Source: Podarcis muralis (taxonomy: Eukaryota). From it: a DNA stretch of 64,000 nt. Below are positions 25,035 through 26,694 of this stretch, piece after piece. Each line of letters starts with the position of its first letter. The first letter of the stretch is position 1. Under the pieces are notes generated by a model. That model was given only the letters and a program-made list of their open reading frames with translations, did not search any database and was not told the origin of the DNA. The stretch is taken from assembly GCF_964188315.1 (NCBI RefSeq), contig NC_135657.1, positions 78,740,001 to 78,804,000 of the forward strand, given 5' to 3'. The position numbers and the translations under genes are program-made.

Positions 25035-26694
25035 ATATCCTTTATGTCACTGTATTTTTTATTGAGGTGCATTGTTGTTATTGCGTCCTAACTTAATGTA
25101 TTTATTTCTTTGTCTCAGAAAATGTAAAGCAGTCCACAGTGGCTGGCAAGCACCCCAAAGTTTGAATGAACCTGGTTAGATAGAGTCCAAGCAGGCAAGC
25201 CAAAAGACACCTTAAAGTTCAAGCTTCAAGGAATAAAGAGGGAGGGTGGAAAAAGATAAAAAGAAAACTGGAAGAGGGGAAGTCCTTTTTCAAGGAAAAG
25301 ACAAAGCCACAACACCAAGTTAAGGCTTCGGCTTTCCGACATTTGCTCAAGTTCCAAAGTCAAAGCCAAGTCTGATTTGGTTGGTTCTCCGGCCCTTGTC
25401 AAGTCCATCTAGCAAGCCCTAAAGAGTAAAGGTCAAGATCAAGTGACGTGGAGGTAACTGCCAAAGTTTCCTTTTGTATCTTATCGCTCAAGCTCTTACG
25501 TTGCAGTCAAGAATTTGTTTGTTTATAACTGTTTTAGTTTAAAATATTGCTTCCTTGAATTGGTACAAGACAACTGTATGCAAATATTTGTTCGCTTTTC
25601 CATGAGTCATTTTCCTAACAGAATAGATTTCATTGGAATACTGAAATATATCAGTAATTTAGATGATCTAGTGACATATTTTTGTGGCATTTACAGCTAT
25701 TTGTTTTAAATATTGGGAGTAAAGGAGGAGGAAAAACAAGTCAGCTGTTTATAGATATGAGCAATGTCTGCAGTAAATCAGAACAGAAGTAATGAACTGA
25801 GGCTGCTTACCTGAGAGTAAGCCACATTGACTTCAGTAGGACTTCCTCCTTAGTAGGTAATATTTCCTATTAATGTGTCAAGTTTAAGGGCCTTCAAATA
25901 AGGTGCACAACTTAAATATTGTTGCTTTAGTTCAGTTATGCATTAGAGATTTAGGGACTCCAAAATACACAGCGAGTCCCTTCCTGCCATTCCTTTGCCA
26001 TTCAGATCTGTAGAGAAACAACTCTGTGTGCCCACAGACATGACATTCAAATGGAGGGGAAACCACTGTGTGTGGGAATTTCATGTGCATTTCAGTGTAC
26101 ACATGAGTTTCTGAATAAGGGCACCTATATTTTAAAGGCATTTATTATTACCTTGTTTCTGCATGTCATTGAGCTGCCTCATACTTTTTGTGGCAATCCA
26201 GGTATACTGACTGGTACTTGCTGTGACACACATACAAAGTGTGAAAGAAAGATGCACATCTTGCAGAATTTTGTGGGCCTTGACACTTACTGGGTTCCCT
26301 TGAGAAAGATGGGGCTTGCAAAACAAAGCGGAGATGACAACATGACTAGGGCAGTGGGCTCTGACAGATGCCTGAGCTTGCCATTCTCTGGAGTCAACAC
26401 TGTTTTGAAATATGCATTGTACCCTGGCCGGGGAGTTGTGGCCAATCCTAGTTTCCCAGCGTGCTTGTGGTTGTGTGTCCTCCTTCCATACATACATATA
26501 TGTATATACAACCAGACACACTGCTAGAGTTCTGCTGTATTTGAGTGGCAATATAAAGTATGAAGCAGCTCTCAGCTTAAGTGGCATATCAAAATAACTC
26601 TTGCTTTTTAAAGTATCTGGAGTAATTTGGTCTATGTTACATGATACAATTTTTTGCTTTGTGCATGTTTAAAGCGTCCTTAACAGACAGTCAT
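25035..26694 (+). other. SRSF12: U12-type (minor spliceosome) intron 2 of SRSF12, apparent AT-AT termini
   Basis: 5'ss ATATCCTTT at 25035; branch site TCCTTAAC at 26677-26684; no polypyrimidine tract; RRM frame (Q-F-E-D) restored only by cleavage after CAT at 26694. Confidence 0.85.

Follow-up and report, generated by a model that had tools for sequence, protein, structure and literature searches.

Results

Organization of the SRSF12 locus

The window, by which we mean the whole stretch of 64 kb of DNA of the lizard Podarcis muralis that was analysed, carries between positions 21346 and 28226 of its forward strand (+) a gene of five exons that is identified from its sequence as the squamate orthologue of SRSF12 (Table 1). 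Its five coding parts sum to 771 nt, i.e. 256 codons and a stop codon. The exons were submitted to the searches separately and not as a joined protein. Both exon halves of the RRM were matched by the RRM_1 profile of Pfam, exon 3 from its Phe onwards, and the single residue that is left between profile positions 44 and 46 is the Gln whose codon is split between exons 2 and 3. The arrangement found, an N-terminal RRM that is split at RNP-1 and followed by an RS domain of the SRSF12 type, is that of an SRSF12 orthologue. In exon 4 the gene agrees with a mammal-like SRSF12 locus (L002), whereas SRSF10-like loci have an exon 4 of another, SRYDD type, and the last 24 bases of the second intron are identical at 21 positions to the published human SRSF12 string and unlike the SRSF10 string. 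On these grounds the gene is assigned to SRSF12 rather than to SRSF10.

The first exon lies in a stretch (21070-21860) that is open in several frames, rich in Arg, Gly, Pro and Ala codons and similar to a CpG island. Another stretch with these properties, at 14560-15000, is probably the promoter or the first exon of the upstream neighbour. In human the neighbourhood of SRSF12 is that of PNRC1 and RNGTT. An intronless open reading frame at 41935-42462 (+) gave a strong match to BORCS6 in Pfam (PF10157, E 9.7e-32), and the open reading frame at 40237-40719, which was tried as a neighbour gene of SRSF12, gave no Pfam match. Further downstream, at 50410-51513 (+), an open frame of 368 aa with a reverse-transcriptase domain (RVT_1, E 1.6e-17) is probably a fragment of a LINE-type retroelement. 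A scan of positions 24945-64000 against Rfam yielded zero matches.

Table 1. Exons of the lizard SRSF12 gene and elements of its second intron, in window coordinates.
Feature	Position	Strand	Remarks
SRSF12 exon 1, coding part	21346..21410	+	21 residues and AG of an Arg codon; gtaagc donor at 21411
SRSF12 exon 2	24930..25034	+	first half of the RRM, ends ..RGFAYI and CA of the Gln codon; RRM_1 profile 13-44
Predicted U12-type (minor) intron	25035..26694	+	1660 nt, phase 2, termini AT-AT; second intron of SRSF12
Predicted U12 5' splice site ATATCCTTT	25035..25043	+	only copy in the window
Predicted U12 branch site TCCTTAAC	26677..26684	+	presumed branch A 26683, 11 nt before the last intron base
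3' terminal dinucleotide AT	26693..26694	+	makes ATG with G 26695, read by gene callers as a start codon
SRSF12 exon 3	26695..26798	+	G of the Gln codon, 34 residues and A; gtaagt donor at 26799; RRM_1 profile 46-69
SRSF12 exon 4	26993..27134	+	39 residues listed
SRSF12 exon 5, coding part	27872..28226	+	RS domain; TAA stop included

The second intron is probably a U12-type intron with AT-AT termini

Exon 2 ends with ..GCT TAT ATA CA at 25034 and is followed by the donor ATATCCTTT, which conforms to the U12 consensus RTATCCTT at intron positions +1 to +8. At the other end of the intron TCCTTAAC is followed by AGACAGTCAT up to 26694 and then by GTTTGAAGAT, exon 3 opening with G TTT GAA GAT GTT. 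The spacer AGACAGTCAT is not pyrimidine-rich. A branch site with a perfect U12 consensus is present at the end of the intron, with its branch A at 11 nt from the last base, inside the 8-14 nt that were reported for the distance between the branch A and the end of U12 introns (Sheth 2006, PMC1557818). The original prediction had named this donor, the branch site at 26677-84, a CAT end at 26694 and the spacing of 11 nt, and every one of these sequence statements holds.

By themselves the two motifs occur at chance-level frequency in the 64 kb, with 1 match to ATATCCTTT against 0.81 expected from shuffles and 2 matches to TCCTTAAC against 2.35 expected. As to their positions, the sole ATATCCTTT of the window starts exactly where the reading frame of the RRM leaves exon 2, and the sole TCCTTAAC on the + strand ends 10 nt before the base that restores the frame. 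By our own estimate from the shuffle means, such a joint placement would arise by chance with a probability of the order of 1e-9.

Each acceptor between 26684 and 26699 was joined in turn to the donor at 25034 and translated. RGFAYIQFEDV was restored without an insertion or deletion solely by an end at 26694, CAT/G (the slash marks the boundary between intron and exon), as had been claimed for AYIQFEDV. An end at the AG (26690) gave ..YIHHV and, three codons on, a stop codon, in agreement with the frameshift and early stop that had been foreseen for the AG at 26689-90. The boundaries that yield the conserved mRNA therefore have AT at both ends, which is also how the human orthologue is tabulated (see below). 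On this evidence the intron is very probably of the U12 type and of the AT-AT subtype. When the boundary is moved by one base (25036-26695, TA-TG), Gln-Phe and the same protein are obtained as well; this placement is opposed only by the U12 consensus and by the human RefSeq-based annotation.

The acceptor translation bears also on the AC at 26687-88, which could serve as the main acceptor and would make the intron an ordinary AT-AC one. An AT donor is canonically paired with AC, and an end at 26688 keeps the frame, giving QVMFEDV with an added Val-Met, as the original prediction had it. However, this AC is at 5 nt from the branch A, which is under the range of 8-14 nt (Sheth 2006), and its use would disrupt RNP-1 as well as the continuity of the RRM_1 profile. 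Nor is this AC kept in register: AACTGGTCAT stands at its place in the mammal-like sequence and AGCTAGTCAT in human, and what these loci share with the lizard is the terminal CAT and the 10-nt spacing. It is therefore highly improbable that messengers encoding QVMFED are the main product of the gene.

The human SRSF12 intron has the same termini

Human SRSF12 (NM_080743.4, chr6:89105531-89107153, minus strand) is listed as a U12 intron of the class AT_AT, with the donor TCA/ATATCCTTT and the branch site GTCCTTAAC followed by 10 nt ending in GTCAT (de Wolf 2021, PMC8280824). The lizard intron is like it in the gene, in interrupting the Gln codon of RNP-1 at the same place, in the TCA/ATATCCTTT donor, in the branch site GTCCTTAAC, in the 10 nt after TTAAC and in the GTCAT end, and it is of similar length (1660 against 1623 nt in human). 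The two differ in 2 of the 10 bases of the spacer and in the first base of the exon, the Gln codon being completed to CAA by an A in human and to CAG by a G in the lizard.

The human intron is also present in the minor-intron tables of MIDB (Olthof 2019, PMC6717393), where supplementary Table S2 tags it as 'HumanOnly' relative to mouse. Against a conserved AT-AT intron this tag means that in at least one mammal, the mouse, it was not confirmed by that pipeline. A mouse orthologue of SRSF12 exists, so that either mouse Srsf12 differs at the intron or the pipeline missed it. The supplements of Moyer 2020 and Olthof 2024 contain nothing on SRSF12.

Introns of the types AT-AC, AT-AA, AT-AG and AT-AT have been taken together as 'A-type' introns, which as a class show a fairly high basal retention (de Wolf 2021). 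For the human SRSF12 intron the retention PSI rose from 0.19 in controls to 0.63 in samples with mutant ZRSR2 (p 0.002, or 0.11 after adjustment, on few reads), and the control value is within the range of the other A-type introns tabulated (PMC8280824). The retention in ZRSR2-mutant samples weakly supports a dependence of the human intron on the minor spliceosome.

The junction in homologous loci of other animals

A word search with a stop-free stretch of 40 aa over exon 3 returned at least 28 short predicted 'proteins' on animal genomic contigs. For 12 of the 28, 22 loci were fetched and their junctions were read. In the predicted proteins a start with 'MFEDV' represents the AT of the intron and the G of the exon read as a start codon, and 'TFEDV' represents an intron that ends in AC. 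As the contigs were found as short open reading frames and an ATG start is what makes such a frame callable, the sample favours AT/G and the share of AT among the homologues cannot be read from it.

CTTAAC followed by 10 nt ending in CAT/G was present in 10 distinct sequences, the window included, and in 7 of these 10 (again with the window) the donor ATATCCTT was also found on the stretch that was read. Besides the window the CAT/G sequences are a squamate-like SRSF12 (L001), a mammal-like SRSF12 that is not identical to the published human string (L002/L003), six SRSF10-like loci (L004/5, L006, L007-9, L010, L020/21 and L022) and a distant homologue (L011-13), the exon 3 identity of which is only 68% and the donor of which reads GA/ATATCCTTTT. 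Three other homologues (L014/15, L016 and L017-19) have CAC/G, 11 nt after the branch motif. The squamate-like SRSF12 is identical to the window over the last 21 bases of the intron (gtccttaac to cat) and 85% identical over 26631-27182, with alignable pieces of the intron further upstream at 76-82%. The mammal-like SRSF12 shows 89.6% identity to the window in an alignment that starts 23 nt inside the intron.

In the sampled homologues the interval from TTAAC to the exon is 10 nt in all introns that end in AT and 11 nt in all that end in AC; in human SRSF10, which ends in AC, it is 9 nt by the published string. Part of this split may come from the way the contigs were found, since the 10-nt spacing puts the TAA of the branch site in frame.

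Two of the predicted proteins (P0015 and P0016) are exact translations of the published human SRSF10 intron end. A word search with an exon-4 stretch, which was meant to give a sample of SRSF12 without the bias to AT/G, had no matches. With the exon-5 open reading frame the sole match was P0001 (Logan, 170 aa), an odd open reading frame of which the C-terminal 100 residues resemble the RS domain of human SRSF12 and which was taken for human.

These junctions also speak to the accuracy of the last base of the intron. AC/G forms do occur among the homologues, and if base 26694 were in truth a C, misread or misassembled, the lizard would possess an ordinary AT-AC intron. However, the same ..GTCAT/G recurs in L001, L002 and L003, which are independent contigs of other runs, the human SRSF12 intron ends in T as well (PMC8280824), and 16 runs from 6 studies contain a fraction of 0.90-0.97 of the sampled words of a 5.9-kb stretch, a figure that is not specific to base 26694. 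We regard an error at this base as highly improbable.

Discussion

We consider it very likely, with a probability of about 0.9, that the second intron of lizard SRSF12 is a conserved U12-dependent intron that splits RNP-1 of the RRM in the SRSF10/SRSF12 family, and that its AT-AT termini go back to the SRSF12 of the amniote ancestor or further. According to established minor-spliceosome biology U11 would pair with ATATCCTTT and U12 with TCCTTAAC, and the 3' splice site would be chosen at the preferred short distance of 11 nt from the branch A, largely whatever the last base is. With the site set by this distance, cleavage would take place after CAT and CA would be joined to G, which gives Gln-Phe. 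The original prediction of a U12 intron in SRSF12 with AT-AT termini and a 3' site set by the distance to the branch point is hence supported.

The novelty that had been claimed for the intron is not upheld. Human SRSF12 was already tabulated as U12 AT_AT, and CAT/G is present in the mammal-like and in the second squamate-like SRSF12, so that the termini are not specific to one lineage. All the amniote lineages that make up the sample, namely human, a further mammal-like contig and two squamates, have AT-AT, and for these lineages the original prediction loses the point by its own standard, according to which AT-AT in all amniote orthologues would remove the novelty. What it had said of the rarity of such introns is correct: AT-AT minor introns number 6 in human and 6 in mouse (Sheth 2006, PMC1557818). 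Among the non-canonical minor termini of animals AT-AT is the second commonest (Larue and Roy 2023). The AT-AT U12 intron of SRSF12 is real, ordinary and already known.

It had further been proposed that a recent, lineage-specific deamination of a CpG changed AC/G to AT/G and left a crippled, rate-limiting intron in the SRSF12 of lacertids. T/G at the junction is the expected remnant of a deaminated C/G, and since homologues with CAC/G exist (L014-L019) such a change, at a CpG lying across the junction, makes sense as a mechanism; the proposal is in this sense plausible in kind, and the fairly high basal retention of A-type minor introns as a class (PMC8280824) would fit a slow intron. However, AT is common to human, the second mammal-like and the second squamate-like SRSF12, it occurs with identical spacing in SRSF10-like genes and in the distant homologue, and the PSI of 0.19 of the human intron in controls is unremarkable among A-type introns (PMC8280824). 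A recent lesion of this kind in lacertids is thus very unlikely, and any such event either predates the split between mammals and reptiles or has recurred.

The presence of T in human SRSF12, in the second mammal-like SRSF12 and in the two squamate-like ones implies by parsimony that it is at least as old as the amniote ancestor of SRSF12. As far as the compared sequences go, the final T of the intron is no lesion of recent date, being common to human SRSF12 and to other SRSF12 and SRSF10-like loci, and a change from AC/G to AT/G, if there was one, was not a lacertid event. The occurrence of AT/G in SRSF10-like genes and distant homologues as well means that AT is very old or else that the switch recurs, and the wide distribution of the AT form suggests that it has been maintained. 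Switching of such termini between human and mouse is frequent (Sheth 2006, PMC1557818), which leaves room for recurrence. It is conceivable, but in our judgement rather doubtful, that the last base of this intron alternates between C and T before the exonic G across the SRSF10/SRSF12 family, through the CpG that spans the junction, and that the T form, which in the sample always comes with the 10-nt spacing, is selected rather than neutral and would tune the expression of an SR protein in a way that depends on the minor spliceosome and is e.g. CENATAC- or ZRSR2-sensitive.

Beyond a correct annotation the finding carries little weight. Predictors that demand GT-AG or AT-AC will misplace the junction and produce QVMFED or a frameshift, and AT-AT is therefore the right call for the lizard genome. 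This one intron, which ends in ..CAT/G at many loci of the SRSF10/12 family and in ..CAC/G at others, offers a handy natural series for relating the final base of A-type minor introns to splicing efficiency. Because AT/G makes an ATG, the junction gives rise to spurious mini-proteins beginning with 'MFEDV..' in public protein catalogues. Those encountered here (P0002-P0029) are 39-70 aa long, cover exon 3 and the intron that follows it (window 26693-26806) and form at least 28 clusters from animal genomic contigs in a public collection.

The lizard intron can be compared with other minor introns that have been described. The human AT-AT introns of KCMF1, ERCC5 and IK (PMC1557818; de Wolf 2021) resemble it in that donor and branch site follow the consensus and only the last base deviates from AC. 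AT-AN introns often switch between human and mouse (Sheth 2006), whereas the AT terminus of SRSF12 is common to the sampled mammals and squamates. The autoregulated minor intron of the paralogue SRSF10 in human and mouse (Meinke 2020, PMC7244321) lies at the homologous place and has the identical TCA/ATATCCTTT donor. It is tabulated as AT_AC in human (PMC8280824) and ends in AC at 9 nt after TTAAC, whereas the lizard SRSF12 intron ends in AT at 10 nt, and it contains an internal exon competing by means of major splice sites (Meinke 2020).
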